A DNA stretch of 50,373 bases from Girardia tigrina (GCA_001938485.1 MQRK01250777.1:8642-59014); one strand, 5' to 3'. Positions 18,469 to 50,047 are shown, counted from the stretch's first letter. Program-made: numbers and translations. Notes: generated by a model not told the origin, from the letters alone.

Positions 18469-18561
18469 GGAGATCTGAATAATTCTACTACTTCAAATAA
18501 ATCTTGCGAAAATGTTTGCACTCCAGACAAATGCCAATGTGTGGGAATGAAAGGCGGAAGA
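18469..18561 (+). CDS. collagen IV-like exon (7S Cys-rich start)
   Basis: ctgacag|GDLNNSTTSNKSCENVCTPDKCQCVGMKGGR|gtaact. Confidence 0.8.
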
Positions 18562-21500
18562 GTAACTGATTTTTAAAGGATTAGATTTTATTATTTGAAT
18601 AAAGGGACCTCCTGGTAAACGAGGACTTGTGGGACCACCTGGTTCGAAAGGAAACATAGGTCGTCAAGGTATTCAAGGACATAAAGGAGATCGTGGTAAA
18701 ACTGGTAAGACAGGATCAAAAGGTTCCAAGGGTGAAATGGTAAGTAGCAATTGTTTGTCTTCTAAAAATAGATTAAATAATACCTTTGTATAAATTATAT
18801 TTTCTTAAAATTTAAAAAAAATATTTGTTACATTTTTTTACTTTGGTTTCAGATTTCTATTAGCACGTTTCAGCATAATTTTGAACAGAATTTATATGTC
18901 TAGTAAAAATATGTTTAGTATAAAAAGTTTATAGGTTGTAAGCCGCCCGTGAAAAACATTTTTTAAGTCTATAAAACCTTTTAATTTTTGAAACATTTAA
19001 CCTAAAAAAAATCACTTCATTTTGCTTGTTTTCATTAAGAAATTGTAAATTCGGAGTTGGCACATTAATACACTTGAGCTACCTGCATCAATTACTCTTC
19101 ATTTATAAGTAAATTTTGTTTTTCAAAGTGACTATGTCAAAACTAACTGCCAGCATATGGAGTGCCTTTGCCCTGCAATTTCATTATTAATAATAAATTC
19201 AGCTGATGCAAGCATGAATGAATGCATTTGCAGTACAGAAAAAAATCATTGTTTAAGAGTGAAAAAAAGTTGATCATAGTAAACTTTGAGATTGACCGAC
19301 AAACCAACAAACAAACAAACATTTTGATAAAATAATTAATAGTATTTAATAAATTTCAATTTAAAACTATCTAAGTAGAAGAATCTCACACACTATTTAT
19401 TGACTTAAATTTTGTGAATTTATGATTCTTAACAAAAGTGTAAATTATAATATTTTTTCATAAATTGTTACATTCTTTATTTTTATTTGTATTGTTCAAC
19501 ATTTTATCTTTCTATATATTAATTTATTTTTAATAATATAGTTATATATATAATAATATAGTTATATATATACAACTACTTACAATTTTCCAGCGTTACG
19601 TACAGACAAATAGACATTTAAGACAAATATTATATTTATATGATTTATTTATTTTTTCAAAAGTAAGAAAGAAATTTTTGTTTGTGAGGAATATTTGAAA
19701 TGTTTGATGTTTAGTGTTTGAATGTTGTGTGCTGATTTAGGATTGCGTCTCCCCTAACCGTCGTGAGACAGTACGAGAGGAACCACAGATTCGGATCACT
19801 GGTAAATGTGCTTGATCGAAAGGTCAGTGGCACGAAGCTACCATCCGAGAGATAATAATTAATATCTTAATTAATATATGATTAATATCTTAAATCTTAT
19901 TATTTGTATTATTATATACATATATTTGTATATTTGTAAATTATTAAATCAAATTAACATTATCATTTAAAATTTATAATCATAATAGATTAAAAATAAA
20001 TTTGAATAAATTAGTTTCAGAGAATAAGAATTTGAAATTTCAAAATTATTTATATATTTGAATATTTTTTTAAAGTGATATAATCACTTTTATAAAAAAA
20101 ATTATAAGTAATATATTAAGTTAAATGATTTTGATTAATTACTTCCAAACATTGCAATAACAACTTTAAAATATATTTATTTTATTTTTAATAATTAATT
20201 TACATATTAGGTCAACAAAAATTTATATTTAAGAACATAGATTTATAATTTTAAAAATCTTTTAATAGTGTTATTTAATATGGAAGAACCATTAAAAAAT
20301 AAAATATATTCAATTGAAAAAGTGAATGTTGAGACAAATTATTTATTATTTCCTTTTTCCAAAGAAATGGATAATTTTGATCGTGTTTATATCATAAAAT
20401 AAACAATCCTAAAACAAATCACATAAACAACTTTCGCTCCGATTTACCCACTTGTGACCCTTTCCCTTCACAACCTCTTCAGATTGTATTACCAACCAAG
20501 ACGAGAAACCAATTTTTTCTAACCTAAATAGTTTTCTATATAGACAGTTTATATACGGTTTTATATGTTTATATCTAAATTTACATTCACTTTTATATAT
20601 AATAAAATATTTTGTCTTTTATTTTTCAACATGATAAATTAATAACAATTCAATGGATTTTAATTAAATAATTAATTGCTTTGCTTACCCAATCATTGTT
20701 AGGTATTAAGTTAGTTAAGTTAGTTCATTTTCGTTTCGCTGACGACATTTAAGTAATTTAAAACCTAAAAAAAGTTTAATTATTAAAATCCATTTTCATA
20801 AAATAATACAAATAATAAGTCATCATTTAAATAAATGTTAATCTTAGGGTGTCCCATAAGTTTCTTCCCTTTTTTGATGCGAAATGAATAGACGATATTT
20901 GTTTTTTAAAGTTGATTTATTATGTTAAATAAGAATCGTTCTGTTCTATAACCTTCCTCCACCTTTCATCATGCCTCATTGCGCCATCTTTCCGAAATTG
21001 TTGAGGCTTACTTTCAAAATATTCTTCAAGGTGGAGCTTTATTTCGCTTTTGGATTTGAAAGATTTACCACGGAGAGAATTTTTTAAGGAGAGGACAAGT
21101 AATAATCAGATGGAGAGTACTAATTTTGCCTAACAGCCAATGCAACATGTGGCCTTGAGTTGTCCTGGTGGAATATGATATATCATCAGTTCGCCAATTC
21201 TGGCCGTTTTTCTGCTATGGCTGCTTTTAGTTGATTCGGTTGATTGCGAAATTTTTCTGCATTGATAGCATCACGTTGCAGTAGAAGCTCGTAGTACACT
21301 TCATCATTCCAGTCCAACCAAATGCACAGAAGAATCTTCTTCCGATGAAGCCCAGGCTTCGCAACAGTTGAAGGTCTATTTTCTTTAGACTAAGTGCGTT
21401 TTCGATGTACGTTTTGATACAAATTCAGGTCTCGTCTCCAGTGATAAGACTCTTTAAGAAGAAGCAAATCGCATGTAGAGACACAGTTTATAAGACCAGT

Positions 21501-24500
21501 CCACGTCAATAAGTGTGGAACTCAAACTTCACATCGATTCGTATATCCCATTTTGATAAATGCTTATGTACCGTTATGAACCACTTACCGTTATCGCACG
21601 CACATTATATCGCGGATTTTCAGCTTGCATAGTCTTGATAATGTTTTTATCCATCATTGCTGGACGTCCAATGCGGTCTTCATCTTTCAACTTGAAATTT
21701 CCAACTCTAAATGCCTTAAACAAATTTCTGACGGTCTTAATAGTCGTAATAGACGGTCTTAAACCCACGTAAACGGTGCAAATCTCGTCTTTTTGCACTA
21801 CTGCCCTTTTTAAAGCAATGAAGCATAACATGCCGCAAGTGCTTCTTTTGAATCTCCATATTGCACTGTGTAATAAAATTTAAGAGTTTTTGTCACAACG
21901 AAACGTACTTCGAAAAGGCTCTAGGACGACTGAAACCGATGTCAAAAGCGGTTTGGAGGATAAACCTGCAGGTATTTATCAACAGTCAGTCAGAATCATT
22001 CATAGCGGGACACTGAAGAAACTTATGGGACAATTTAATATTTTAATTAATTTGAAATTAAAACGTTTTTTAATGTTTTAGAATAAAATGTTTTGTAGTA
22101 TAAAAGAAAAACAAAATTAATAATACAAATTGAATTAAATATCACTTTTAATTTAGAGTTTTTAAAAAATTAATAAAGGATTTAAAATATTATTTAAAAT
22201 ATAAATATTTGAAAATTGATTTTTAAAAGGAAGAAGAAAGTTTGTTTGAATTTGTTTGTAATAAAAATTATTAATAGTGCTATTATGACTGATAATATTG
22301 ACGTAATTCACAAAATCAATTACTTTTAAGTTATTTGGTTTAATTTAAAGTTGATTTTACATTTAATAGTTTAACTTAAAAATGTCATATGTAAAACATT
22401 GCTTTCATTTCATTTGTTTTAATATTATCGGAAATTGGTTTATGACCTACCGGAAAAATTAGGCAAGTTTAAAGAAAATTCATAAAAGTTATGATCTCAT
22501 CCAAAAGTCAAATATTGTAGGAACTAGCCTAGAATTTGGAAGATACTCAAGGAATGTCTTGAAAGTAAACAATCAATATCATATTTATATAGAAAATCAC
22601 AATGGGCATCAGGCATCACCTTACTGAAGATTATGAAGGAATTTGATATTTCAAACACATAACGAAAATGATCTTAAAAAAAGTTACAAAGAAGTTTGTC
22701 ATATCCGCTATGAATGGAAGTATGATCAAACACTAAAGCACAGTTTGTCCTGAACTTGAAGAACTGATATCATCGAAGAGTTGCCTGATGAGAAACTTCC
22801 ATTGTTGATCGAGTTAGGCCAAGTGTTCATTGAAAGTATCTTTAATCAACAAATTATCTATAAATGTTATAAAACAATATTCCTGAATAAAGATTTTAGG
22901 ATTACCTTAGCAAAAACACATATTCTTCTTTCCGTTGAAAAGTTTTGGTAGAGATGCTAAAGCAGTTATTAAGTGTTAACACCACATAACTTTGCTTTTT
23001 GGGTACGTATCAAAACAAAGGCTTAGAAATTGATACAAAAACGTATTTGATTATCGAAGAATAGAATTATTACGGATTTATTTATTTTGTGTTTACGTAA
23101 ATATTTTTTTTAGTTAGATATGAGCATTGTGATGGGTCACAATTCACAGTTCACATTTGATAATCAAAGGAACTTACAAGATCAAAAAGTTCAAGAACTA
23201 CTTTTCTAGATCACACTTTATTATATCAATCGATAAATTGATTTTAAAATACCCTAATTTCTTGCGAATAACCGGCACCTTATGAATTTCATTAATTTCC
23301 ATAAAATATTAAAATTATTCACGCATAACTCGCACTTCAAATATTTTTTAATTCTTTTTTTAGTTTTAAAATGCCACCGAAACGTAGGTCATATACAACT
23401 GAATCCAAATTAAAAGTAGTCAAATTTGCTGAAGAAAATTTCAATGGAAGAAGTGCGATTCGTGTATATACAATTCTCTGACTTCATTTAGACTTAAAAA
23501 TGAACGAAACTTTTGACACTTGTTTTTAATATTTTTTAATAATATTTCTTTGATACGTAATAATAAAATACATATATAACCCGCTTCAATAATTATTTTT
23601 AGAAAATTTACTTTTTTTCGAAAAACGCGCGGGTTATACGCAATAAATAAGGATAAATAGAAGATTAAAATAAAAACCTTAACAAAATATTTTTCTAAAA
23701 AGATTTCAAAAATTAAATAAATAAATAATAGGCTTGATTAAAAAAGATAATTAATAAATTTCAAGTGAAATATTTTCCGATCAGTTTAGATAAAATTAAT
23801 TACGGTGACATCAAAGACTACTAGAATGTTTTTCCATTTGCTAATGATAATATTAATTTATTAACAAATTATTTTATTATTATTTTCTAATAATAATATT
23901 AATTTAGTAATAAAAAGAAAAAGAAAAAACAACTCCATTAAAAAATATATTTTAAGATAATATATTTCGACGGTGAATATATTTAATGAATGATTTAGTA
24001 ATATTCTACGTAAAATTATTCGAAAAATGTTTTTGACCTGTCATGAGTGTCATGTCCCATACATTGGAGAGACAGTCTGTCAACTTGGCAAACGAATCCA
24101 GGAGCATGCTTATAGAGTGATAAGAGTGATATTTGAGCATTGTAAAACTAATAAATGTAACTTAGTATAAATTATTTCAAGATTTTATACAAGAATTTTA
24201 AAAATTATTGGACGTGTAATTTCAAGAATGGTTAATAAGATTTCGTAATCCAAAAATCAATGCTAAGAAACATTCTCAATCATTATGTTACGAGTTTTTG
24301 ATTAATTTTACTGAAGACATTACACAATCGTTGAAAATTTTTGAAACATTTTAAAATCTAGTTTTAAATGGTGTTGTTTTGTTTATTTGAAAAGATTGCC
24401 ATCGTTTTTTTAATAAAAAAATGGTATCATTTAATTTTTCATACTAAATGCCTACAATCACTATCACAAAAACTTTCATTTTAAAAATATCCAATTCATA

Positions 24501-27500
24501 ATATGTTCCTAGTTAGAGTCATTCGACTGCCTTGGTAGATGTTAATAAACATTTGGAAGGATAAAAAAGATTTAAGCTAACAGATATTTAATTATAAAGC
24601 TAGTACGATAGTTAAAACATTATTTTGTAATTATTTTATTAGTGTTGTTAGGTACGCTATTAACACATTGAATGCTGAGTACGAGATATCTCGTACTTCA
24701 ATATTCATTAGTTAGACGCTAAGTACGAGATATCTCGTACTCAGCATTCAATGTGTTAAATGCTAAAAAGGCAACAATGTAAACTTTTTTTCCCACGCGT
24801 AGCGCGCGTAGCAGACGTTCGGTGCATGATGTCAACAGCAGTCAATGTGTTAATATTAGGTTGGGCGAATAATAATGGCGGTTTTTAAGCTTTATACTTT
24901 GTTTATCTACTTTGATATGTATATAAGTTTAAATGCATTAGTGTTAGATATTATTTGAAATCTAATGCCTAGCTGTATATTCCTATAGCCATATTGTTAC
25001 CTGTGATGAGAAATGGATCCTGTATGATAACCGACGTCGATCTGCACAGTGGTTGGACAAAGATGAAGTACCGAAACACTTTCCAAAAACAAAACTAACA
25101 CCTCGTAAGGTTATGTTGACAGTTTGGTGGTGTGATGCTGGAATCATTCACTATAGTTTCTTGAATCCAGGTGAAACAATCACAGCGGAGAGGTACTGTC
25201 ATGAAATTGATGAAATGCATAAAAAATTGAAAACCNNNNNNNNNNNNNNNNNNNNNNNNNNNNNNNNNNNNNNNNNNNNNNNNNNAACCCTTTGTCCGGG
25301 ATTGGTCAATCGAAAAAGTACCATCCTTCTTCATGATAACGCTAGACCTCATATTTCAAAAGTGACTCTTCAAAAGCTTAATGAGTTGGGCTATGAAACC
25401 CTGCCTCATCCACCATATTCACCAGACCTCTCGCAAATGGACTTCTACTTTTTCAGGCATTTGTACAACTTCCTACGTGAAAAAAATTTCAAAAACCAAA
25501 ATGATGCTCAAAATGCCTTCCAAGAATTTGTCGCTTCGAGAACCGATGCATTTTATGCTGATGGAATNNNNNAACTTGTTTCTCGTTGGCAAAAATGTAT
25601 TGATGCCAACGGTTCATACTTTGATTAATAAACTTTTGTTTCTGTGAATTTGTACGTCTTTGAAGTTTGTGTCCCAAAACCGCCATTATTTTTCGACCAA
25701 CCAAAGATATTTTCTTCAGACATTAAAAAATTAAGAAATTCAAAAATATTTATTATCTAACAATAATAAGGTTTTTTAAACAAATTTCGGAGATTTTTGT
25801 GATTTTTAATTTAACCGTTTTTTATTAATAAATATATGATAAAATATTGATAATCAAAAAATTGAAACCTGGAATCTTATTTTAACGTCTTATTTTAAAA
25901 TCTAATGTCTAGATTTTATTTTACATAAATAAATATACGATGTGATAATGAAATATCGATCATAAGAAAGTAAAATCTTTAACATCAAAATCTAATTTTA
26001 AAATCTTACAAGTGTCGAAATAAATATCGAATTATATGAGAATATGGAATAATTTTCCGTTTTAAACCGTTTTCAAAAGGTTTATTAAGGCAAGTTCCGG
26101 TAATTTATTACATTTACACGTATAAAGAGAATAGAATTATGTAATTTATTATAATCTCATTTACCAGTAATTTAATTGATGTGTAATGGCTTAGGGTCCA
26201 ACCGGAGAAATGGGACATAATGGAACTAATGGATGGCCGGTAATTACTTTTATTCAGTCCCTTATATGATAAGATTTCAGGGCTTTCAAGGATATAGGGG
26301 TCCAATGGGATTTAAAGGATTGATGGGCTGCGATGGAGCCATAGTTAGTGATTATATTTAATTATTATTAAACTTTATTATTAAATAATGAAAAAAAGTA
26401 TTATATTTAAATATTATTGAGAAAAATATTTTTGACTAAAAAATATTATGATTTATTTTTTTTAGGGTGAAACTGGTGATTCTGGCTTAAATGGTACCAA
26501 AGGAGCAGACGGACTTCAAGGTGATGAAGGAGACGTAGGCGACAGGGGTCCAGACAGTAGTTTAGTTAATTCGACCAAGGGAGACCAAGTTAGTATCAAA
26601 GACATTTGTTGTTATAATTATTTTTTCAAGATTATTTAATTGCTTTAGAAAAGATAAAATTTTAAACCGTAATTTAAATGGGAATGAATCCTTAATCAAT
26701 TTAATCACAATTTATGTGCTGTAAATAAATGGGAAAATGATAATTTTATAAATGTTCCTTTTTATTGACAAACGGATGACATTTATTTCTCATTGGAAAT
26801 TTCTTTTAATTTTTAAACACAGATTTCTGGAATTAAAAATTATTTATATTTTATAATAATTACAATATTACAATAATGTGTCGATAATTAAAATTTATAT
26901 TATAAAGTTACTAAATTATATAAATAATCTGTGAAATATATGCAAGAACTGGCAAGTTTTTTCTTATTAAGATAAAATTAAATTGCTCATTATATATAAA
27001 AATAGACTGACCATTAATAGATCTAAACAATTTTTCCAAAAAAAAGTTTCCTTGGTTTCACAAAATCATACGTAAATTTATTAGGCCGCCAGTTTATTTT
27101 GTTTGAAATTAGTTTGAAATTTGAAGAACTAAAGTAAAATTTTATTGATAATTTACCAATACAAATATTTGTCATTCATCAAAATATGCACTCATATTAT
27201 CGACACTTTGGTAATTTGAGCGGCAACTTGTTAAGTCCATTTGAATACAAATTTGGTGGATGAGAATCTATAAATTTTCAAAGAGCATTTTTACAGATAC
27301 TTTGGAATCGAATTCTTTTCCTATCAAAAAGTTTTTGAAATTAAGTCGAAATTGTAGTCAGTTTGGGCTAGGCCTGGTCAGTATGGAAGATGATGCATAA
27401 GTTCAAACTCAAATCACTGTAGTTTTGTCACGATTTCAAGTGCAGTACGTAGTTTTGCATTGGCAAGGAAATGCGGCTGTTGTTCTTTGTGATTCCGCAT

Positions 27501-38800: not shown

Positions 38801-41800
38801 CCATTCAAAAATATTCCTCACGACGTAAAATTAGTTGTCGATCGAGATTTAAATTAAAACTTTATTTCCTTTAAAACTTAAAATAGATTTTCAAAATATT
38901 AAATTTCGGTACTGCGAGGAATGTTTTGAATTGTTTGTTGATATTGTGCATGTTGTATGTTGATTCGAATTGTGTCTCTCCTACCCACATGGATGATTGG
39001 TATTTTTTTTGATTCGTACTAATTGAAAATAATTTTATTTAATTTTGAAGTAAAAAGATTTAAAATAATTTTCGAATGTAATATTTAATTTTTAATGTAA
39101 TTTAAATTTTAATATGTACTTCTTAAAAAAATGTTTAGATTTAATTTTAACCAATTAGAATCTTTATAATTAATAATAAATATTTTTCATTTATTTTAAA
39201 ATTAGTATGAATTTAGACAATATATTTATCAAGAAAATTGTCGAATAGCGAAGGCGGTTTGAATAATTGTTGTCATGACAATTCTGATTGTGATGTTAAT
39301 AAATGTTTAAAAAATCATATTGATGTTGTTAATAAATATTTAAATATTTAATAAATATTAAATATTTTAGTTCCAATTAGAATGAAATGTTAATTTTTTC
39401 AATTATTTAATATATATTTTTTTATGAAGATATGTGTGTTTAATATTTAAAATTCAAAGAGAAAAAGCATCTAGATAATTAAAAATCAGACTTTATTCGG
39501 TGTCCTAGAAATAAAATAGTAATGAATAAATTTTTGTGATAAATCTCTTGTTTTTATCATTTTAGTGGACGTTAATACAGGTTTCATAAATGAACATAAG
39601 AAAAATGGGTTTATTAGTGTTCATTTTGAGTAAGTTTGAATTTATATGTTGATTGGAATTTTATGAAAATATAAAATATTTATTTAAATAATAAATAATA
39701 TGTAGTAATGTTTTACAAAAAAATAAGTTTACAATTATTTATATAAATTAGGTACAATTGGAAATATTGGTGAGACTGGTGAGGACGGTGAAGTTGGTAA
39801 ACCTGGAGACGTTGGCCAGAGAGGAGACAACGGAACCATGGGAATGAAAGGAAAAAAAGGTTATAAAAATATTTCTCTGGTTTTAAAGCAAAAGTGAATT
39901 TAAGGTGAAATTGGGGAAGAAGGCAGTGTTGGAAATGACACAATAGGTGAAAAAGGATCAAATGGAACAAAAGGATTCCTTGGCCCAAGAGGACCAAAAG
40001 GTCTTAAAGGAGAAAGAGGAGAGCAAGGTGTTAATGGCACAAAAGGTATGTAACTTAGAACTTTGTAATTATATTATTGTACTTAATAATTTAAGTAAAG
40101 TATGTTTAATCTTCGCCCAGTCTTGTAAAGTCTGAAAGACTTAAAATTATAATTTTTATTAAGCTTGTTTAAAAGAGTATTATGAGTAATAATTTTTTTA
40201 ATATTATTCATCTATAGAAATACAGCTTCCATTAAATTGTAACGTTAATAGTTCAAGGACCAAATGTTTCTGCAGGGTGTTTTCAAAATTTAGACGTACA
40301 TCACTTATTAAACTTTTATTTGAGTAATACGCAATGTATGTTCTTCAAGAAACATAGAGCTCATTAATTTAAAGTGTAATCGTTTTATTAATTTTAACTG
40401 AAACAATAATTCCTCGAAAATGTTAACTGTTTCGATTTCCAGATAAAAATGAAGATATCAAATGAAGATAATTTTAAAAGAAAAGTTTACAAAAATTTAT
40501 TATTAATCTAAAAATAAAATTATTTAAACAAATTATTATTTATTTTATTAAACAAACCTTGATTGTAGCTCAAGTTAAACATCACATTTGAACATACTAG
40601 AATGGCAAAGCTTAAAGTTTATTTCTCTTTACACGTTTCAAAGTGACTTAGGTTTATGGAAAGACTTACGTATTCGTTTTGTAAAACTGTTAAAGATGTT
40701 GTTTTAAAGTTCTTAATTTAATTTTATGATTTTATTTATAGGTCTAACTGGAATGATTGGAAATAACGGGACAAAGGGTGAAAGAGGTGACACTGGAGAA
40801 AAAGGAGATCGAGGAATACCTAACCCGAATGCTACCGCTGGTGACAGGGGAGAACAAGGTGCAAGAGGCATGAAAGGAATCCAAGGATCTATAGGAGAGA
40901 ATGGAACAGATGGAAATTGTACTGATAGAGGTTTAATGGGTGAAAGAGGTGATATGGGCCCACAAGGTGAAAATGGAACAAAAGGAGACATGGGAATAAA
41001 GGGAGAAATGGGAGAAAACGGTACCATAGGTGACACAGGGCAGAGTGGTACGTTTAAAGATTAAGAATTTCATAAATGAAAATTTTAAATTTCCTTTTAG
41101 GTGAAAATGGAACAGTTGGATTAATGGGAGAAACTGGTGATGCCGGACAAAATGGTTCCATTGGTTTGAAAGGACCTAGAGGAGAAAAAGGGGAAAATGG
41201 CACTCAAGGGGATATTGGAGATAGAGGAATTGCAGGAGAAAAAGGTAAATATAAATATGTTTTTAAAATAATAATTATTATTTAGGAAATAATGGTTCAA
41301 TTGGTTCGGTTGGACTTAACGGAACAAGGGGACAGAAAGGAGATTCCACTCCAGGAATTTCCGGAGATATAGGAGATCAAGGTGTTAAAGGACCACAGGG
41401 AGAAAAAGGTATTGCAGGCATGCCGGCTAAAGATGGACGGCGTGGAGATACAGGTCAATCATTCATTGGAGTTAAAGGAGACATTGGAAGCCCTGGAGAA
41501 AATGGTACAATTGGAGATAGTGGTGAACAAGGGGAAAACGGAACACGTGGCTCTCAAGGAGAGCAAGGAATTAACGGAACAATTGGAGATACGGTATTAT
41601 ATTAGTTTAAATTATCTTAAAGAAACTGTTAGGAACTTTAGAGTTATTCGATTTTGAACTCCTGGTGTCTTTATAATTTTCCATCAGATTTTGACATTTG
41701 ATTCTTCAGTGTGTACAAAAGAGTTATGACTTTTTGACTTTTTTAAAAAAAATAATTTTCTCTGTCATAAATCGATGAACTTTTGTTAAAAAAAACATTG

Positions 41801-44800
41801 AAAACATGTTCGATTCCTCTCCTTTGTAAAAAAGGGTCACTCGCAATTAAAATTACAATTCGTCATTTATTTAATCTTGTTCCTGCTACTTCTAATACGT
41901 GTGTCTTTACTACAAATCATTTAAAACTTAGATTAGAAGTGTTTCGAAAAGAAACAGTGGGATACTCTACAGACCAAGAAACCAGTAAAAAAATGATCCA
42001 TCCCTCTAAAAGACAAAAACTTTCTAATCATCAACTCATCATCTTATTATCCTGGTTTTAGTGATTCTGACTCTGAGGCTGACGACAGTGAATATCAAAG
42101 CGATGAAGAAGAAGAAGAGGAAACTACTCCTACACCAAGCTGAAAACATCATAAAAGCAAAATTGCAGTCAAACTGATGACCTTCACAAGATTATCAACA
42201 TGCAAAGCTGCTAAAATTTGCAAGCAAATGGTTCATGAAGGTATTGACATCATAACTTCTAGTCAATCAGCTATTTACAAGTCAACAATCAAAGAGTCAA
42301 TCAAACTGAAAGAAGAAATGATTGAAAAGTTGCATTTGCAAAGGCAGTCCTAACACTTTGATGTCAAGCACATCGGTGGAATCAATTATCAAGTGGTCAT
42401 CCTTATAAATTAAAGAAGATGAATCAAATTGGATGTACTTGGTTTGGTAGATGACAGGTCAAAAACTATTGCTCAAGGAATTTCTAAAGTCCACGATTAA
42501 TTTAACCTATGGAATTCAAAACAGATGATTGTTACAGATACCACCAGCGTTAATATTGGAAAAAAGAATGGTGTTGTTGTATGATTGCAACGAATATTCA
42601 CAGAAATAAGCATCTACAAACCTCAGTTTATCAGATGTCAACACCATGTATAAGATAGAATCCTCCATTTGGTGATGGATGAAAAACTTGGAAGTAAAAC
42701 AAAATCACTAAACATCGAATATCCATTTGTATCTCAACTGTTGAAGGATCACAAACAAATAAAAATACAGTTTGATAATGGAAAAGAAGTTATTCTTGAA
42801 ACATCAGACTGAAGAGATAATTTGAAATTTTTATTTCATCTCACTCGAATGTTCCGATCTTTTGAGGAAAAGGCACATTTTCCATTGTTCAGGTTTAAGA
42901 ACATACCCAACATCGACAATCCGAGGTGGAATTCCAGAGCTATACTAGTGATCCTGGCCTTCATTGTAATTCCTTTATCAAGGTCAGTTCCGCATAGAGT
43001 ATGTTGATTTATATGGTATGGCTGGGTAAACCATTTGTTTACAGACTAACTGTACAACGAAAATTACTTTAATAACTTGCTGAAGCACAGAATCCATACA
43101 AAAAGGCTTTAAGCTCTTTGAAAAATCACTGGAAGCGAGAGCCATACATACTACAGATACCCAGAAGTAATTAATAGCGGAGTGCGCAATCAAATTGTTC
43201 GGAATTTGAATCAAGATATATATTATACAGAGCACGACAATTAAGTCTCAAAAATTAAGTCTCGGAAAATTAAATGGTTTCTTTAAAAGATAAAATTTAG
43301 AAAAAACTAAAAATCTAATAAATTACTTAATCGTCGGAGACTTTTCATTTTTTTCTAAAATTTACTGGAGTTTTTCATTTTTTTCAAATTTATTATTTAA
43401 AGAAACCATTTAATTTTCGAGACTTAATTGTCGTGCCCCATATATTATTTATTATTATTATTTATATTTAAATTCAAAATTTGAATCTTCATCTCTTCCC
43501 AAGACAATTCAAAGGAATCATTTATTCGAACTTGAATGACAATCTCTGAAAATATTTATCGTATTCTGTTTTGGAATGACAATCACTGTTTTATTTATTG
43601 CCTGCTTGCTGTTATATATATATATACCTATATAAAATAATATGATAATAAATTAAATTAAATTTAAAGAAAAAAATAATTAATAATTCAAATTTTTAAG
43701 AGTCAAATTCAGTTTTTTTTTAAATAAATTATTTCTTTGTAAATCGAGTCATGTGACTCATATTGGTTACCCCCGTTTTTTTTTTGAGTTGGTGGGTATT
43801 TAGTATGCCAGTTGTGTGCTAGTTGAAGAGAGAAATCCGACTTGTGTGAAGTGGCAAGAGGAAATTTATTCATCATGCAAAAGTTACACCTTCGATTCCT
43901 TCTATGCAACAAGCATGTGAGGAATATTTGAATGTTTGATGTTTTGTGTTTGAATGTGTATGTTGATTTGGGATTGTGTCTCTCCTACCCAGATGGATGA
44001 TTAATATTTTAATTCTTATTATCTAAAAATATGTAATGTTTAAATTTATTTTTAATTTCAAATAATTTTAAATAAGTTAATTAATTTTTATAATATTTAA
44101 TAAATAAATCAAATTAATATTTTTTAAATAATTAATAATCATTTTAATTATTATCCAATAAGTTTTGACAGATTGTCTTAAGGACAATCAAAATTGTTGT
44201 TTAAATAAAAATATAAAAATTCAAATTGGTGTTCTTAATAAAGCAATAGCAAGGTCTGACTCATAGTTGGATTGGAAATTTGTTGTATTACATGACTATG
44301 ACATTCTAAATACATTTGGATACACAGTAGTACTTATGTCAAAATCGATTTTTCAATGGCGGGATGAACTTTTTAGAAAATATATGTAAATAATAGTTCG
44401 ATACGTAGTTTTTAGGTAAAAGTTCATCAAAATGAAAGGAAAAAAAACGGAAAGTAAATTGAAAGTAATCGAAAATGGATTCAAATTCGAAGATGGATGT
44501 TCACAAACAAAAAAAAGGGAATAAGGAATATATTTGAAAAAATCAGATATTTTATTAGATATGATAAAAAAAGAACTTCAAATAGATAAAAGTAATAAAT
44601 CGTACATCCCTCTTCCAGAGTATCTTATTTATGCATATAAAAGATTAATAAATCAAAGTAATATAAATGATATTAGAGATCCCGAAAAAGTAGTTTTGGC
44701 TCTCTTTTCTTCAGATCCAGATAAGATAGTCAGTTGTGATAGTTTACCAAAAGATAAGAAGAATTTAATAATCTTCGATTATATGGCAAATTTGAAAGAT

Positions 44801-47800
44801 CAAAAAATAATGAAATCTTATTTTACTAGAGGTCGTCATAATAATTGCAATACAATATATATTTCTCAAACATTTTATGATCTTGATAAACATTCAATAA
44901 GAAACAATTCTAATGGATTCATATTTTTTGAACTGGGAAAACGAGATGTTTTAGGTGTTTTAGTCTTAAGCATTTATTTAATTTCCTTCAGAATTATAAT
45001 CGATTAATATATAATGTTTTCATGTTCAAGGTTTTTATCAATAGAAAGAAGAAACAAAACTATATTTATGTTTATACTTGCAGAACTATTCAAGGGTAGA
45101 ACTGATCAAATCGATAAGATATCAGTAAATGTCATCTAAATAGAAAATGACCCGCAGAAGCTAAGGTATTTTTCTTTGAAAGTATAGGATCATGGGGTTG
45201 GAAAACGTCATAATCTTAACGTACAATTTAAGTGAGATTTTGTGTTGACTAATTAACAATACAGGGGATTAGTTTATGGAGTCATTATCATTTTTTTACG
45301 TTTGCTTAATTTAAAATATTACTGGAAAAAATAACTCAAATTGAAGGAGAAGGATTGTATCATAAGGCATAAAGCAACCGTTGAATAAAAAAAATCAAAC
45401 AATTTTTACGAATAGAAGTAAAGATATAAAATTTCCCTTAGAGAGCTGCAACCTTGAACGTGTTAACTAGAATGTGATTCTTAGAATTATTAATGAAAGA
45501 TGTGGAAGAACTTCGATGTACTTTTGTGATTTTCAGGTTGTGTATTTTTCTTAAAAAGAAGAATCGCACTGCATTCATAATCCTTCAATTACGGGATCAA
45601 TTTCAAATGAGAACATAAATAATAAAATATATCATGTGCTAAACATCACGTGATATATAATAATAGAAAATATATACAACATGGGGTAGTCTAATATCAT
45701 GCTTTATTAGAAAAATGCAATCTTTCAGTTTTCTTCCATTCATCCTTTCTTCATAGTAAATGAATTGATTCTTTTTATTAGCAACGAAATTTATCCATTA
45801 ATAAAAATATTTATAGACAATATATATTTCGACGGATCAACCGTATCTTCAGGTCAAAATATGTTCAGTAAAAAATCAATTACACATTTATCACTTTATT
45901 CTGATATTGTTTATGACATGCATTTGAGAGACTGTCCGTTATCTCTGTAAACGAATTCAAGAACAAGGTCGAAAAGAGAGTAAGAGTAATAATGCACAAC
46001 ATATGAAAAATGTAAATGTGATGTTCATATTGAAAATTTCAAAATTCTATGTAAGCAATTTGATAGTTATTGGGAGTGTCGTTTGAAGCTTTGTTAATTA
46101 GGTCACATTGCGCTAAATTCAATGCTCAATCGGTAGTCTCAATCAACCTATTGAGATTTTTTGTTTAGAGTGATTTTATACAATGGATTACATATTCATT
46201 ATTTTTGCATTTACAGGTGAATTAATTTATCAAGTGACCTGAAGATGACGGTTGATCCATCGAAATATATTGTCTATAAATATATTTTAATGGATGAATT
46301 TTGTTGTTAACAAAAAGTTCTCATCTGGATTGAAAATTATTTTAAGATCACTTATTTGTCTTAACTAAAATCAATCTTTACCAATTTTTTAATCTTATTC
46401 TTGGATTCACTTACAGAGATTATGAGATGTTTCTCAAATGTACTTGAAATCTCATTCCTTGAATATCTGATATACGATATCGATCACAGCTATAAGGCGT
46501 AGTAGAGTTACTTCAAAATATACTACCAATCTTTATTGACTTTAAGATAAAGTTTGAATTTAAAGGATTATTTGCATATTTAAAAATAGAATTTTTAAAA
46601 TTTAATCATTAAAATATTTTATTAATTTCTTACGAACTTTGTAAATTTATCATATTATTTTTTTAAATGATAGGGAGAAAAAGGCCGTCGAGGAGAAAGT
46701 GGATGGAGTGGTAAAAGAGGTTTGCCAGGACAAAATGGGACAGAGGGAAGTCGTGGCAAAACTGGTATCAGAGGAGAAAAAGGGGAAATAGGGTCACAAG
46801 GGGAAAAGGGAGAAATGCAAAATGCAACAAAAGGAGAAAGGGGACAAAGAGGACATAAAGGAATACGAGGAGATAAACCAGAAAATACAACTGAGGGAGA
46901 AAAAGGGGATTATGGTAATAAATGACATTTAAATATCGTTTTTTGAAAATGTTTATAATAAACGTTTCAAGAAACTTTCAAAAAGATATTTAGGAAAATA
47001 AATAAAATAAGTAAATTGATTTTGATAAATTGTTATCAGTTATTTTTTATAAGTTTTAAAAATACAATACCATCATTAATCACCTTCTAATGTGGTTGAT
47101 GTAATATGATGTGGATATTTACGTAAATTCCCGTAAGTTAGAGTCTTTGAAAAGTACAAAATGTTTCATATCTTACAAGTATCTTATAAGTATCTTTCAT
47201 ATTTTATAAGTACAAGTATAAAGATTATCTTCAGATGCTACTGAAATGGAATTTTAAAAGTACAGTTTTTCATCTTAACCATTTGAATTTAGTTTTAAAA
47301 TTCTATTTCAAATGTGATATTTAAATCAATGTCATGGGTATAATGCTGCACACATTAGAGAGATTTCTTGTCATATATGTAAACGGTGTCTGGAGCACAG
47401 GCGATTGGCTAATTGTAGCAGTATTGGTGGACATATGGAAGTTTGTAGATCCGATGTAGCGATAAACAATTTAAAATACAGTGCAGTAATTTGAAATATT
47501 ATTGAGAGGTTAGCCTGTGAGACATTATTGAATGAATCATTTAATCCATCTGTAGTGGGCTCGATCACCCTTCTCGTGTGAGGGAAACAAAAAAGGTAAA
47601 GAACCCTGCTACAAAATTTATTAAAATGAAAATATTTGTTTGCGATTGAGATTCCTCGTTGTTCTGCAGTTTTTGACTTCGACATTTTCGGTAATTCTGT
47701 TTATTCAAACAAAAAAACATTTTTTTATTTGAATTTTATTTTCGTTGATTTATTTTTTTTTTGATTTAAATTTCTTTGTCAACTAATTTAAGCATTTCTG

Positions 47801-48023: not shown

Positions 48024-48066
<43 letters not shown>

Positions 48067-48766: not shown

Positions 48767-48803
<37 letters not shown>

Positions 48804-48911
48804 ATTAGAAAGAAAGCTAATGAAAATAATGGAAAAAGGAAAATGTTAAATTAATAAATTCTTCAGATTTAAATAGCGTTTTTGATTATTTAAATCAATA
48901 AATTAAAAATG

Positions 48912-48947
<36 letters not shown>

Positions 48948-50047
48948 ATTAAAACAAATTAAATTCATGCATGTGTGTTATAGTTTGTTGATTTCGATTT
49001 ATTGAGTATGTTGTTCTCGATCTGTTAATGTAATTATTACTATCAGTATTTTAAGGAAAAATTTTTAATGACGTATTGAATACGACAAATAATGATTTTG
49101 TTTAATATTCACTATTATCACATCGATTAACTTATGAATGTGTGTAAAATCTGACTAGAATTGCAGAAAAATAGTGGTTGGGTTCTACACCATGATAATG
49201 CTCCTGAGAGCATCTCATACTTCCGTTGTAACCAAGCTGCATATTTACCTGACATGGCACTGTGTAACTTCTCTTTGTTTTCTTGACTTAAGATATTGAT
49301 TTGAGGAAGTCGTTTAACAACTTTACTAGAAATAAAAGAAAAGTCGCTCGAGTTGCTCCAGGACATTCCATTACAAGTATTTTATGAGACACTTGAAGAT
49401 TTGAAAAATGTTGCTAAATGTACATATTTTTCAAGGGAAGTACTTTAAAGGAGATTTAATAAATTTCTAATAAGAATTAATCACTTTTGTTTTATTTAAC
49501 TAATAATAAAATAAGAATAATCTTTTCATTTGAAAGTTTATTATTTTGTTTTGTTAATTTTGATATATTTTAAATAAAAAATTCCTTTAAGGGGACATCG
49601 GTCTTCCTGGAAATAATGGAACAATTGGAAATAATGGAACGATTGGTCCCAAAGGAGACAAAGGAGAGAAAGGGGATATTGGACCAGTTGGTCCAGAAGG
49701 TCGTTTATATCTTTTTAAATATTATTAATAAATTTTAAATTTAGGCATAAATGGAACAGAAGGAGACAAAGGAGATCAAGGACAGAAAGGAGAGACTGGA
49801 AAAATGGGATCTATTGGAGAAAAGGGTTTAACTGGCAGCATAGGCGAAAAAGGAAGTTCTTGTGGTCGTAGTAATGAAGGCTCTTCAGGTTTCAGAGGAA
49901 AACCAGGTGTTAAGGGTGAGAAAGGAGATAAAGGAAACAAAGGAAAAGTTGGAATTGAAGGAGAAAAGGGAATAGTTGGGGATCCTATGCTTGGCAAACC
50001 CGGAAGGAAAGGTCATAGGGGTTCTCGAGGAGACGATGGTCAACAAG
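18469..50047 (+). CDS. col4a: Collagen type IV alpha-like chain (partial, 26 exons traced; 7S and interrupted Gly-X-Y domain; signal exon and NC1 not seen)
   Basis: All 26 exons join in frame via GT-AG introns (3949 nt, ~1316 codons). The N-terminus CENVCTPDKCQCVGMKGGRGPPG and the GCDG motif match the collagen IV 7S pattern. The Gly-X-Y run has frequent short interruptions. The first 12 introns are phase 0 and most later ones are phase 1, usually splitting a Gly codon, as in vertebrate COL4 genes. Alpha1 versus alpha2 is not resolvable without NC1. Confidence 0.8.
18605..18739 (+). CDS. collagen exon
   Basis: aaag|GPPGKRGLVGPPGSKG...KGEM|gtaagt; 135 nt. Confidence 0.92.
19683..19900 (+). mobile_element. 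PLE head repeat interrupted by a 28S rRNA fragment
   Basis: gtgaggaatatttga...gattgcgtctcccctaacc matches 43917-43990; the continuation atgattaatat..aatcttatta resumes after the rRNA piece. Confidence 0.7.
19757..19856 (+). rRNA. 28S rRNA fragment (pseudogene) including the sarcin-ricin loop
   Basis: ACCGTCGTGAGACAG, AGTACGAGAGGAACC and GAAGCTACCATC are conserved LSU 3'-region motifs in the correct order, with an internal deletion. Confidence 0.9.
20844..22038 (-). mobile_element. Decayed full-length mariner
   Basis: TIR tgtcccataagtttcttc at both ends; start MEIQKKHLRHVMLHCF at 21859; LKDEDRIGRP, ITGDET and FHQDNSRPH motifs. Confidence 0.9.
23252..23653 (+). mobile_element. pogo/Tc2-like deletion derivative
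   Basis: Imperfect TIRs with TA flanks; ATG 23371 MPPKRRSYTTESKLKVVKFAEE resembles a Brinker-type DNA-binding domain start. Confidence 0.7.
23930..24320 (+). mobile_element. 5'-truncated PLE with inverted pLTR fragment
   Basis: CHECHVPYIGETVCQLGKRIQEH; upstream inverted piece aatatatttcgacgg similar to 45820-45835. Confidence 0.75.
24664..24755. mobile_element. 92-bp piggyBac-like MITE
   Basis: TTAA TSD (24660-63 and 24756-59); perfect 34-bp TIRs, each containing the 20-bp palindrome agtacgagatatctcgtact. Confidence 0.85.
24856..25704 (+). mobile_element. mariner element with N-terminal deletion (contains assembly gaps)
   Basis: TIRs ttaggttgggcgaataataatggcgg / ccgccattatttttcgaccaacc; VTCDEKW, HDNARPH and PPYSPDLSQMDF motifs (ORF 25053-25628). 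Confidence 0.92.
26195..26239 (+). CDS. collagen exon
   Basis: ttag|GPTGEMGHNGTNGWP|gtaatt; 45 nt. Confidence 0.85.
26281..26343 (+). CDS. collagen exon (GCDG 7S motif)
   Basis: tcag|GFQGYRGPMGFKGLMGCDGAI|gttagt; 63 nt. Confidence 0.88.
26466..26588 (+). CDS. collagen exon
   Basis: ttag|GETGDSGLNGTKG...NSTKGDQ|gttagt; 123 nt. Confidence 0.9.
27130..27850 (-). mobile_element. Old mariner remnant
   Basis: Minus-strand FLSRILACYENWI (cf. FL.RIVTGDEKWI) plus decayed C-terminal motifs. Confidence 0.7.
28503..28538 (+). CDS. collagen exon
   Basis: tcag|GDRGLNGSMGIN|gtaagt; 36 nt. Confidence 0.85.
28700..29560 (+). mobile_element. MULE transposase remnant
   Basis: LTDFEMATMDAF followed by a decayed (G)CYF(H)FC motif. 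Confidence 0.65.
29880..30400 (-). mobile_element. Penelope-like reverse transcriptase remnant
   Basis: Minus-strand FDKG...SKSDY and GSQPAKLYG-PKVHK motifs are typical of the PLE RT N-terminal region. Confidence 0.75.
30725..31309. mobile_element. piggyBac-type MITE
   Basis: TTAA|CCCTTCGTAAC ... GTTACGAAGGG|TTAA. Confidence 0.88.
30880..31223. mobile_element. hAT (Charlie/Buster-type) MITE nested in the piggyBac MITE
   Basis: CAGAGGTCTCAAA / TTTAACACCACTG TIRs; GGCCC(G) subterminal repeats; 8-bp TSD ATTTAAAA with central TA. Confidence 0.88.
31861..31923 (+). CDS. collagen exon
   Basis: atag|GTKGEKGLPGFQGQIGMNGTK|gtaaat; 63 nt. Confidence 0.9.
32000..32176 (+). CDS. collagen exon
   Basis: ttag|GENGTMGPKG...GERGHK|gtaaat; 177 nt. 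Confidence 0.9.
32222..32275 (+). CDS. collagen exon
   Basis: ttag|GLKGESGNKGEPGVVGNP|gtaata; 54 nt. Confidence 0.9.
32319..32381 (+). CDS. collagen exon
   Basis: ttag|GVKGKNGTNGEKGLEGFPGDR|gtatgt; 63 nt. Confidence 0.9.
32430..32474 (+). CDS. collagen exon
   Basis: ttag|GKKGLKGNEGYQGDQ|gtttga; 45 nt. Confidence 0.88.
32517..32636 (+). CDS. collagen exon
   Basis: atag|GNEGRPGQQGPIG...GPPA|gtaaat; 120 nt. Confidence 0.9.
32697..32910 (+). CDS. collagen exon
   Basis: ttag|IINCTSSDYEKGVKG...KGDT-G|gtaaaa; 214 nt. Confidence 0.88.
32973..33113 (+). CDS. collagen exon
   Basis: atag|(G)VSGKEGEQG...GEK-G|gtgatt; 141 nt. Confidence 0.88.
33169..33497 (+). CDS. collagen exon
   Basis: acag|(G)DNGTTGEKG...VGEP|gtatga; 329 nt; matches ORF 33051-33503. 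Confidence 0.92.
33880..34077 (+). CDS. collagen exon
   Basis: ttag|GRKGEKG...KNGTK|gtaaat; 198 nt. Confidence 0.9.
34124..34340 (+). CDS. collagen exon
   Basis: aaag|GEMGANGTV...NQIQ-V(split)|gtaatt; 217 nt. Confidence 0.9.
34560..34830 (-). mobile_element. PLE head repeat copy
   Basis: Reverse complement of the 43917-44140 family. Confidence 0.7.
34951..35124 (+). CDS. collagen exon
   Basis: acag|(V)QSKGQKG...GQN-G|gtaatt; 174 nt. Confidence 0.9.
35411..35788. repeat. ~107-bp direct duplication (35411-35517 and 35683-35788)
   Basis: atgatttaagattggtaatatt...gagagtataaaacct occurs twice. Confidence 0.85.
35789..35825. repeat. (TA)n microsatellite
   Basis: Direct reading; similar tracts at 4543-4561, 48026-48064, 48770-48799 and 48914-48944. 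Confidence 0.9.
35826..36360 (-). mobile_element. Tc1 transposase remnant
   Basis: Minus-strand WSGESCF..FDGRIRVW and LDWVAQSLNLNATEKLW (cf. WPAQSPDLNPIENLW); Tc1-like end at 35568-35600. Confidence 0.8.
37038..38360 (-). mobile_element. Highly decayed Tc1/IS630-like fragments
   Basis: RYFNTGSVSSSARCGRQR HTH-end motif and FLDE motif; may be two separate remnants. Confidence 0.4.
38600..39330. mobile_element. Two divergent (head-to-head) PLE 5' copies
   Basis: Minus copy ends at ~38822 and plus copy starts at ~38914; both carry the gaggaat...cccagatgg head. Confidence 0.7.
39752..39859 (+). CDS. collagen exon
   Basis: ttag|(G)TIGNIGETG...KGKK-G|gttata; 108 nt. Confidence 0.9.
39905..40045 (+). 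CDS. collagen exon
   Basis: taag|(G)EIGEEG...VNGTK-G|gtatgt; 141 nt. Confidence 0.9.
40742..41047 (+). CDS. collagen exon
   Basis: atag|(G)LTGMIGNNGTK...GQS-G|gtacgt; 306 nt. Confidence 0.92.
41101..41244 (+). CDS. collagen exon
   Basis: ttag|(G)ENGTVG...GEK-G|gtaaat; 144 nt. Confidence 0.92.
41286..41593 (+). CDS. collagen exon
   Basis: ttag|(G)NNGSIG...TIGDT|gtatta; 308 nt. Confidence 0.92.
41640..43200 (+). mobile_element. hAT-related DDE transposase remnant
   Basis: LHFD, IVTDTTSVNIGKKNGVV and FIRCQHHV (CxHH) motifs; many stops and frameshifts. Confidence 0.7.
43228..43440. mobile_element. Tc1/mariner-type MITE
   Basis: TA|cagagcacgacaattaagtctc ... gagacttaattgtcgtgcccca|TA with extended inner inverted repeat. 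Confidence 0.82.
43915..44150 (+). mobile_element. PLE head repeat copy
   Basis: gtgaggaatatttgaatgtttg...ttgtgtctctcctacccagatggatgatt. Confidence 0.7.
44534..45007 (+). pseudogene. Maverick/Polinton (adintovirus-like) A32/FtsK packaging ATPase fragment
   Basis: Walker-B-like NLIIFD followed by FTRGRHNNCNTIYISQ..(F)YDL...IRNNS, diagnostic of A32-family ATPases; N-terminal part decayed. Confidence 0.85.
45816..45855 (-). ncRNA. Minimal hammerhead ribozyme copy (inverted)
   Basis: Reverse complement gac-CUGAAGA-u-ACGG(uugau)CCGUC-GAAA-uauau-AUU-guc. Confidence 0.7.
46236..46274 (+). ncRNA. Minimal type I hammerhead ribozyme (PLE-associated)
   Basis: gac-CUGAAGA-u-GACGG(uugau)CCAUC-GAAA-uau-AUU-guc; stem I gac/guc; palindromic AAUAUAUU stem III. 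Confidence 0.75.
46674..46914 (+). CDS. collagen exon
   Basis: atag|GEKGRRGESG...KGDY-G|gtaata; 241 nt. Confidence 0.9.
47370..47700 (+). mobile_element. Degenerate PLE GIY-YIG remnant
   Basis: CHICKRCLEH and ETLL..S.NP motifs. Confidence 0.5.
49130..49455 (+). mobile_element. mariner C-terminal remnant
   Basis: WVLHHDNAP and YLPDMALCNFSLF (cf. YSPDLAPCDFFLF). Confidence 0.75.
49592..49699 (+). CDS. collagen exon
   Basis: taag|(G)DIGLPGNNGTI...GPE-G|gtcgtt; 108 nt. Confidence 0.9.
49745..50047 (+). CDS. collagen exon
   Basis: ttag|(G)INGTEG...DGQQ-G|gtaaat; 303 nt. Confidence 0.92.

Follow-up and report, generated by a model that had tools for sequence, protein, structure and literature searches.

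Does the collagen IV-like gene of Girardia tigrina crowded with N-glycosylation sequons encode a chain selected to carry glycans along its triple helix, or does the motif have another origin? The question was addressed in a window of 50,373 nucleotides (GCA_001938485.1 MQRK01250777.1:8642-59014), in which a first-pass annotation had joined 26 exons. The gene rebuilt from the sequence likewise consists of 26 exons on the + strand (positions 18469-50047), with introns that are all GT..AG and a single unbroken frame. The joined product comprises 1316 residues and preserves the Gly-X-Y register over the exon junctions. The surrounding genome is AT-rich (~28% GC), and its assembly is fragmented into 255,254 contigs.

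The gene opens in the window with an internal exon, exon 1 (18469-18561; AG acceptor, GTAACT donor, phase 0/0). Exon 1 encodes a 7S-like non-collagenous start with three sequons and four cysteines (C-x3-C-x4-C-x-C) directly ahead of the first Gly-X-Y triplets. Pfam has no scoring profile for 7S, and we take the four-Cys pattern to resemble the vertebrate 7S start. An exon with a start codon and signal peptide was searched for and not found, position 18469 being an internal acceptor; membership of the family suggests that the chain is secreted. Exon 2 (18605-18739) encodes 45 residues of Gly-X-Y, including two of the three Gly-Pro-Pro triplets, and contains no sequons. Intron 2 (18740-26194) harbors an assembly gap (25236-25285) inside one copy of a mariner-type transposase, a + strand remnant at 24993-25622 with further N at 25568-25572. 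Residues 34-223 of the remnant are collinear across the gap with an intact copy at 11759-12436 (tblastn), and the gap touches no collagen exon or reading frame. Exons 3 (26195-26239), 4 (26281-26343) and 5 (26466-26588) are predicted from sequence, and use of an in-frame alternative donor at 26564 in exon 5 would remove one N-S-T sequon.

The gene is expressed and spliced. Two transcript contigs, X5 from the same species (zero mismatches) and X7 from a relative with ~1.4% divergence (a single 3460-nt contig), lack precisely the introns predicted between exons 7 and 18, and together they confirm all junctions from exon 6 through exon 18. Exon 6 (28503-28538) has its end read in X7, whose loose end at 31861 carries it. 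The following joints are 31923>32000 after exon 7 (31861-31923), 32176>32222 after exon 8 (32000-32176; X5 and X7), 32275>32319 after exon 9 (32222-32275), 32381>32430 after exon 10 (32319-32381) and 32472>32515 (cut +2) after exon 11 (32430-32474). Exons 12 (32517-32636; joint 32636>32697), 13 (32697-32910; joint 32908>32971, cut +2), 14 (32973-33113; joint 33112>33168, cut +1) and 16 (33880-34077; joint 34077>34124) are each joined onward in both X5 and X7. Exon 15 (33169-33497; joint 33497>33880) encodes 110 residues and matches the Pfam Collagen family (PF01391) at 60 bits. Exon 17 (34124-34340) is joined to exon 18 (34951-35124) in X7 (joint 34338>34949, cut +2), and X5 has a loose end at 34340 whose sequence is the beginning of exon 18.

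The remaining exon junctions, the end of exon 5, the gene start and the contig join described below are predictions from sequence. Exon 19 (39752-39859), with its weak donor GTTATA, is solely predicted, and exons 20 (39905-40045), 22 (41101-41244), 24 (46674-46914) and 25 (49592-49699) are also predictions. Exon 21 (40742-41047) encodes 102 residues with six sequons and matches the Collagen family at 60 bits. Exons 23 (41286-41593) and 25 are each single copy in the genome, and the closest paralogous exons to exon 23 are 43-49% identical. Exon 26 (49745-50047), the last in the window, ends in phase 1 (G|GTAAAT).

The 3′ end of the gene probably resides on a second contig, C174890 (locus L018), which holds further exons at 949-1683, 1726-2012 and 4870-5127 (stop included). 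The window's contig ends in intron 26 inside a foldback-type transposon, whose left end (50159-50373) consists of a terminal inverted repeat and 42-nt tandem repeats; its right end appears on C174890 (L018 426-586). The two contig ends form a 94% inverted repeat, the transposon termini share an identical 19 nt, and the same 6-bp target duplication, GGTTCT, is found on both flanks. The phase-1 junction between exon 26 and C174890 keeps the Gly-X-Y register, neither coding part has a second copy in the genome, and five of the six N-G pairs on C174890 are N-G-T. With this contig the model reaches 1742 residues, and an open frame runs through 28 exons.

The domain organization of the full model agrees with the collagen IV-like assignment of the first-pass annotation. 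The 7S-like start is followed by 1344 residues in Gly-X-Y runs, broken by 28 interruptions of 1-25 residues each before the NC1 domain, so that the helical region totals ~1500 residues with interruptions included. The NC1 domain on C174890 (233 residues) contains 12 cysteines in two C4 repeats, matches PF01413 (C4) twice (88.1 and 62.5 bits; cut-off 27) and matches solved NC1 structures at E values of 1e-30 and 1e-20. In alignments to solved NC1 domains, the two sulfilimine positions, which are widespread in collagen IV but not universal, are replaced, Met93 by Ile within an N-I-S sequon and Lys211 by Arg. Among the Schmidtea mediterranea chains, col4-3 alone is reported to be without the sulfilimine Met and hydroxylysine (PMC8072372). 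The sulfilimine residues are also missing from P0151, a 305-residue database fragment with 78% identity in NC1. The locus is likely to be a single-copy, transcribed collagen IV α chain gene of a flatworm, most probably a freshwater planarian, a judgment made jointly with that of selected helix N-glycosylation.

The window part of the chain contains 54 N-x(not P)-S/T sequons. Forty of its 44 N-G pairs are N-G-[ST] (33 NGT and seven NGS), leaving four exceptions and 14 other sequons, and these counts reproduce the earlier estimates. In the full model, Ser or Thr follows 45 of 50 N-G pairs, and of the 63 sequons the helix holds 45, NC1 four and the N-terminus together with the interruptions 14. 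All helix sequons lie in the only register permitted by Gly-X-Y, in which Asn at Y and Gly are followed by Ser or Thr at X; the first 75 helix residues carry none. Exon junctions fall within two of the sequons: one at 28538|31861 (I-N|G-T), opened by the final Asn of exon 6 and completed in exon 7, and one at 35124|39752 (Q-N-G|T), opened by the final Asn and split Gly codon of exon 18 and completed in exon 19; both had been noted in the first-pass annotation and are located in the model, and a transcript contig contains the first. Proline and asparagine constitute 4.3% and 6.1% of the window part, respectively, and Gly-Pro-Pro occurs three times, as estimated earlier. The charged triplets that had been singled out are abundant in the full model (KGE 39, KGD 17 and RGD 9), which also contains RGE 11 times.

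The impression that this pattern was selected is borne out by chance tests. Position-specific shuffling of X and Y residues yields 6.8 ± 2.3 N-G-[ST] motifs, and never more than 18 across 20,000 shuffles, versus the observed 40, and pooled X/Y shuffling yields 3.8 ± 1.9, so the sequon frequency is far above the shuffled expectation. The association of Y-position Asn with Ser or Thr at the next X is strong in the window part (table 39/4/20/299; Fisher 7e-33), and the full 1742-residue model gives 45 motifs against 7.6 ± 2.4 expected (z = 15.6). The enrichment extends to the interruptions, which helix geometry does not constrain: they contain 14 sequons where 3.3 ± 1.6 are expected, none of 20,000 shuffles attained that number, and a sequon is present in nine of the 13 long ones. 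N-x-T is glycosylated more efficiently than N-x-S. The Thr excess after N-G in the window part (Thr:Ser, 33:7) fits this higher efficiency; 33 of 35 X-position Thr residues belong to sequons, compared with seven of 27 X-position Ser residues. Pro follows none of the 45 motifs, with ~3 expected. In the relative represented by X7, 21 of 21 sequons are retained despite 14 amino-acid changes (chance p ~0.2).

The sequon pattern is restricted to one of the five COL4 genes compared. The four COL4 paralogues in the same genome contain 0-2 N-G-[ST] among 17-25 N-G pairs each, which equals the chance level. Among 41 NC1-bearing collagen IV fragments from other animals, only five motifs occur in 7722 helix residues, versus 33 per 1000 helix residues in the present gene, so the pattern is not routine among these fragments. 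The richest of the best 150 collagen hits reach 21 per 1000 and look like bacterial or phage collagen-like proteins by sequence. Within the mere 69 helix residues covered by the orthologous fragment P0151 (65% identical) there is a single N-G-T, whose position is shifted.

Of the readings considered, N-glycosylation under selection along the triple helix accounts best for these data and is likely, with site occupancy predicted from the sequence, and the rod is probably sugar-coated. The same motif, G-x-N-G-S/T-y-G, forms the N-glycosite that experiments have established in the 7S helix of vertebrates (PMC7619536). Planarians are known to produce N-glycans (PMC5936828), and STT3, retrieved in the search for oligosaccharyltransferase genes, is present at three or more genomic loci. 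N-glycosylation within Gly-X-Y is rare according to a review (PMC7619536), and zipping of the helix might be impeded by glycans spaced 30 residues apart on all three chains. An artefactual origin, through composition, an amplified DNA repeat, mis-assembly or a dead gene, would draw on the Asn codons favored in an AT-rich genome and on the fragmented assembly. It can be rejected with near certainty: the position-specific shuffles always fall below half of the observed count, the paralogues share the composition bias without the pattern, and the frame is open with spliced transcripts in two organisms. The 40 window motifs comprise 21 different 9-mers in 37 different heptapeptide contexts and codon use is the same inside and outside the motif, which together argue against an amplified repeat. 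A sugar-free role, in which Y-position Asn and the next-X Thr form an inter-chain hydrogen-bonded or hydration contact with K-G-E-like geometry, matches the Y-Gly-X′ register of the known axial K-G-E/D pairs. Such a contact is nonetheless very improbable as the origin of the pattern; it accounts neither for the four-fold N-x-S/T enrichment in the interruptions and N-terminus nor for the NC1 sequons, other collagens, including four paralogues rich in Y-position Asn, lack the pair, and the Thr preference and absent following Pro obey oligosaccharyltransferase rules.

Two further explanations accept the glycans and assign them a different function. The first-pass annotation had proposed that glycans and K-G-E/K-G-D salt bridges replace hydroxyproline in stabilizing the helix, perhaps in adaptation to a parasitic or oxygen-poor life. 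Y-position Pro is indeed the lowest of the five COL4 genes (6.4% versus 9.2-16.3% in the paralogues), KGE and KGD total 56, and glycosylated Thr stabilizes a proline-poor cuticle collagen of a vent worm. However, the genome contains two prolyl-4-hydroxylase α loci well above the Pfam cut-off, and the paralogues are similar in total Pro (3.9-9.6% versus 4.3%) and have Lys at 29-36% of Y positions, yet show no sequon pattern. Low proline is thus a trait of the AT-rich genome rather than of this gene, and glycan compensation for it is unneeded in this genome. The interruptions, which are not helical, show equal sequon enrichment, and NC1 also carries sequons; stability of the helix is no concern in these parts. 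Of the closest named orthologue, which comes from a tapeworm, the region sampled is proline-rich (17%) and sequon-poor (one motif in ~470 helix residues), and the COL4 gene number here fits free-living planarians (PMC8072372, PMC12141075); neither the replacement of hydroxyproline, which we regard as unlikely, nor the lifestyle adaptation is upheld. Slightly less likely still is a purely intracellular role, in which the sequons serve as calnexin/calreticulin handles for a slow-folding, proline-poor chain and have no function in the matrix. The low Y-position Pro would suit this role, and N-glycans of fibrillar procollagen C-propeptides have a proteostatic role (cited in PMC7619536), but one or a few glycans suffice to recruit chaperones, 63 evenly spread sites are far beyond that need, and the paralogues fold without sequons. 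This role overlaps with selected helix N-glycosylation rather than excluding it.

Selected helix N-glycosylation would operate as follows. Oligosaccharyltransferase would glycosylate the unfolded chain in the endoplasmic reticulum, ahead of zipping from NC1, and the outward orientation of X and Y side chains would produce a folded rod with one N-glycan per ~30 residues per chain. Folding control by calnexin/calreticulin would presumably be engaged by the glycan sheath. Once the rods are in the matrix, the sheath may hold water around them, limit their lateral packing, impede proteases and cover receptor sites.

Known glycosylated collagens resemble the planarian chain in part. Riftia vent-worm cuticle collagen is proline-poor and carries O-linked galactose on Y-position Thr; it shares with the present chain a low proline content and many helix sugars, which are predicted here, but the planarian chain is a basement-membrane collagen with an N-linked sequon and Thr at X. 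In the collectin surfactant protein D, a Y-position Asn followed by Gly-Ser within the triple helix, as in the motif described here, is N-glycosylated on all three chains, but each chain of this soluble lectin has a single site, situated in a short stalk. Vertebrate COL4A1-6 follow the same plan of 7S, interrupted helix and 12-Cys NC1, but they have a single N-glycosite in the 7S helix and none in the central helix or NC1 (PMC7619536). The region of that vertebrate site corresponds to the sequon-free first 75 helix residues of the planarian chain, which also differs in its Ile and Arg at the sulfilimine positions. Schmidtea mediterranea col4-1 to col4-7 similarly represent multiple unlinked COL4 genes in a flatworm-specific cluster (PMC8072372), and the absence of sulfilimine residues from col4-3 suggests that it may be orthologous to the present gene. 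The string 'glycos' is absent from the main text of that planarian collagen IV paper (PMC8072372), and the sequon pattern thus appears undescribed.

We tentatively propose, at somewhat less than even confidence, that one planarian collagen IV chain is a dense N-glycosylated rod with ~60 glycans per chain that has lost its sulfilimine residues and builds or tunes a looser, more hydrated and protease-shielded network. If so, glycans would add perhaps half again of the protein mass. The chain would represent a form of collagen IV that no other animal is known to have, and would provide a natural test bed for the effects of N-glycans on the triple helix.

The gene on the + strand at 18469–50047 encodes a genuine, expressed collagen IV chain that carries N-glycosylation sequons (N-x-S/T) far in excess of chance. 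The window has a GC content of 24–33% and abundant transposon remains, and stop-free Gly-X-Y stretches run along its + strand from 18.6 kb to the window end. Exons were chosen by AG/GT sites that preserve both frame and glycine register. The resulting model contains 26 exons with GT..AG at all introns, and the joined product has 1316 residues without a stop. This model is identical to the 26-exon model of the first-pass annotation. Of the 25 introns, fourteen measure 41–76 nt, whereas five extend over several kb and bear transposons. An upstream search for a signal-peptide exon gave no convincing candidate, and the gene start is missing from the model.

Intron 2 (18740–26194) contains an assembly gap, a run of N at 25236–25285, which is flanked on both sides by parts of one mariner-type transposase copy. 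When aligned to the intact copy at 11759–12436 (Pfam Transposase_1), transposase residues 34–223 are collinear across the gap in a single orientation. The two flanks thus form an unbroken stretch of a single element, and the gap bears on no collagen exon or frame. Disturbance of the reading frame by the gap is rejected because the gap lies inside one transposase copy in intron 2. The end of exon 2 and the start of exon 3 are both in phase 0, and the glycine register is preserved; a small exon may formally lie within the unread gap letters. The two mariner-type copies of the window (11759–12436, − strand, an open 225-aa frame; 24993–25622, + strand, containing the gap) share ∼35% protein identity. 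Two further element traces are observed. A 157-aa open frame in intron 23 (44534–45007, + strand) weakly matches the Pox_A32 packaging ATPase (E 0.0012, below the Pfam cut-off) and is possibly a Maverick/Polinton-type remnant. At 7194–8524, open frames overlap on both strands, and the frame at 8079–8504 (+ strand) matches a gag-type aspartyl protease just below the cut-off, so this stretch is probably an LTR-retroelement fragment.

The window contig stops at the window end and contains no C4 domain. Among the C4-bearing contigs of the genome, only C174890 is rich in N-G-T, with five of the six N-G pairs in its short helix part belonging to the motif. The first 600 bases of C174890 contain an inverted copy of the window-end repeat (94% identity). 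Both copies begin with the same 19 nt and bear GGTTCT on the outer flank, the hallmark of a single inverted-repeat transposon that duplicated 6 bp of its target and inside which the assembly broke. The acceptor on C174890 is in phase 1, like the donor of exon 26, with the glycine register preserved, and the coding parts on the two contigs are each single copy in the genome. Judged from the repeat ends, the phase, the single copy and the N-G-T richness, C174890 is probably the continuation of the window gene. The element in intron 26 (window 50159–50373; L018, the coordinates on C174890, 426–586) is a transposon of the foldback type, whose long terminal inverted repeats consist of 42-nt tandem units. 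A 110-nt stretch beside it (L018 ∼775–890) has >1200 first-look matches in the genome.

Three added exons, one of them behind a 42-nt intron, extend the model to 1742 residues and a stop codon. The C-terminal NC1 domain consists of 233 residues with 12 cysteines, contains Pfam C4 twice and matches solved NC1 domains at 1e-30 and 1e-20. A four-cysteine start immediately precedes the first triplets. The predicted domain plan is therefore that of a complete collagen IV minus the signal-peptide exon. In the NC1 alignment (L018 1500–2012 and 4870–5127), both sulfilimine cross-link residues are replaced (Met93 to Ile and Lys211 to Arg). The isoleucine at the Met93 position is the middle residue of an N-I-S sequon; a glycan could thus sit at the NC1 trimer–trimer face.

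Splicing was checked against contigs from two sequencing runs, X5 (same species) and X7 (a relative ∼1.4% diverged), whose RNA nature is a guess, though contigs joined without introns are what transcripts would give. The check covers 31800–35200 (exons 7–18); exons 1–5 and 19–28 and the contig join are predictions. X5 contigs (0 mismatches) skip five predicted introns, and the trailing letters of the X5 contig ending at 34340 match the beginning of exon 18. In a single 3460-nt X7 contig, each of the eleven introns from exon 7 to exon 18 is missing, cut at its predicted sites, and the end of exon 6 directly precedes exon 7. The contigs thus agree with the first-pass splicing at exons 7–18 and the exon 6 end, and the gene is transcribed and spliced as modelled over exons 7–18. 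The reading as a pseudogene is rejected outright. A stretch of intron 17 (34536–34877) is covered by short contigs from three of the four runs (not X5), to a depth of up to ∼1800; the stretch is a dispersed repeat and does not belong to the transcript.

The window model contains 54 sequons. Forty are N-G-[ST] (33 Thr, 7 Ser) among 44 N-G pairs, and 14 lie outside N-G. Gly-Pro-Pro occurs three times, and the first-pass counts of sequons, N-G-[ST], N-G and Gly-Pro-Pro prove exact on recount. The full model contains 63 sequons, and 45 of its 50 N-G pairs are N-G-[ST]. The Gly-X-Y repeat permits a single sequon, with Asn at Y and Ser or Thr at the next X; the repeat thus dictates the form of the motif but not its frequency. 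A shuffle that kept X residues at X positions and Y residues at Y positions (20,000 rounds) bore out the suspected enrichment, with 6.8 ± 2.3 motifs expected in the window model against 40 observed. Chance is rejected as the source, since the shuffle maximum is 18. For the full model, 7.6 ± 2.4 are expected and 45 observed (z = 15.6). Y-position Asn is strongly associated with a following Ser or Thr (Fisher p = 7e-33, window), and sequons take up 33 of 35 X-position threonines and 7 of 27 X-position serines (window). Proline never directly follows the motif (0/45). Codon use inside the motif equals that elsewhere, and the 40 motifs comprise 21 distinct 9-mers in 37 heptapeptide contexts. Such variety excludes the copying of a single DNA unit, and an origin in a DNA repeat is rejected.

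Sequons are also in excess outside the helical triplets. The non-helical N-terminus and the interruptions hold 14 sequons (3.3 ± 1.6 expected; none of 20,000 shuffles reaches 14), and nine of the 13 long interruptions contain one. The longest sequon-free helix stretch measures 110 residues (model 1218–1328). Two other bare stretches comprise the first 75 helix residues, in the 7S region, and the 67 residues that precede the first NC1 sequon; it is speculation that these two end stretches are perhaps left bare for end-to-end assembly.

Four further COL4 genes in this genome, sampled at 414–473 triplets each, contain 0–2 N-G-[ST] among 17–25 N-G pairs (chance expectation 0.9–2.8). Asn occupies 11.4% of Y positions in this gene and 4.6–6.1% in the four paralogues; Thr occupies 9.1% and 0.7–2.4% of X positions, respectively. 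Within the genome, the comparison covered these four paralogues; a sequon-rich partner chain may lie among the numerous collagen loci of other types or the three COL4 loci known from short contigs (C22781, C238129 and the C33866 group). Across 41 collagen IV fragments that include NC1 (drawn from mites, insects, amphioxus, fish, reptiles, birds, a tapeworm and unnamed sources), five N-G-[ST] occur in 7722 helix residues, or 0.65 per 1000 versus 33 per 1000 here. The motif density proposed as unusual is thus matched neither in the paralogues nor in fragments from other animals, and by these comparisons the saturation with sequons is confined to this gene and is not typical of the lineage. When the C-terminal open frame was searched against proteins, most matches were long repetitive collagens; 11 of the best 150 matches contained NC1, and none supplied the helix of a more distant orthologue. 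N-G-[ST] density among these 150 reaches 21 per 1000, and the densest look like bacterial or phage collagen-like proteins. A word search with exon 21 gave no match within the searched protein lengths, with longer relatives outside its scope. By NC1, the closest protein is P0151, a 305-aa database fragment (78% identical in NC1). It also lacks both sulfilimine residues but has no sequon there. A tapeworm protein is also close (50% identical in NC1), and at its locus the orthologue shows one motif in ∼470 readable helix residues, with 17% proline. A second long collagen gene lies directly downstream of it on the same strand (L041, the tapeworm locus, 13781–22925), and this head-to-tail pair resembles the reported arrangement of Schistosoma COL4 loci (PMC12141075). 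In the ∼1.4%-diverged relative, 21 of 21 sequons are preserved, a result without statistical significance.

The genome contains STT3 genes, planarians produce N-glycans (PMC5936828) and G-x-N-G-S/T-y-G is the glycosylated motif of the vertebrate 7S helix (PMC7619536); the gene is therefore read as an N-glycosylated collagen IV chain. Most likely, as far as its sequence indicates, the chain receives its glycans co-translationally and from end to end, ahead of helix formation. The product would be a rod with glycans pointing outward at about every 30 residues per chain, and likely effects would be folding with the help of chaperones, hydration, impeded lateral packing and a shield against proteases and receptors. 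Alternatively, the Asn-Gly-Thr pair could act sugar-free, by a hydrogen bond, but this leaves the sequons of the interruptions and NC1 unexplained. What helix, interruptions and NC1 share is the sequon of oligosaccharyltransferase and no trait of helix geometry. The earlier proposal that glycans stand in for hydroxyproline is not supported, as two P4H-alpha loci are present and the sequon-free paralogues are equally proline-poor overall, although Y-position proline is lowest in this gene. Low proline as a special adaptation fails likewise, given those paralogues and an AT-rich genome; the comparison shows that the proline poverty of these collagens follows from the AT-rich genome.

With a tapeworm protein as the best named match, the animal is read as a flatworm. 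Many unlinked COL4 loci are found in its genome, in agreement with planarian reports (PMC12141075, PMC8072372). The loci C40914, C50992 and C149936 (and C33866, C171107 and C189206) form triplets of contigs with identical scores and layout, which seem to be uncollapsed copies or haplotypes and make assembly copy counts unreliable. Schmidtea has seven COL4 genes, and col4-3 is reported as the only chain without the sulfilimine residues (PMC8072372), so that col4-3 is the likely counterpart of this gene. The main text of that paper does not mention glycosylation (PMC8072372). A literature search turned up no account of a collagen IV rich in sequons, and sequon saturation of collagen IV appears to be undescribed so far.

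Every animal basement membrane is built on a scaffold of collagen IV, whose chemistry is commonly viewed as dominated by O-glycosylation and by the hydroxylation of proline and lysine. A recent review describes the one N-glycan motif within the 7S helix as "particularly intriguing", with an undefined role, and reports no such motif in the central helix or NC1 (PMC7619536). The motif that is single in vertebrate 7S occurs 45 times in this chain. The host animal is amenable to RNAi and matrix proteomics, and the sequon-rich chain makes two questions directly testable: how N-glycans affect the triple helix of a collagen (its folding, lateral packing, stiffness and receptor masking), and whether one specialised chain can tune a basement membrane. 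The gene is thus of real interest for matrix biology.
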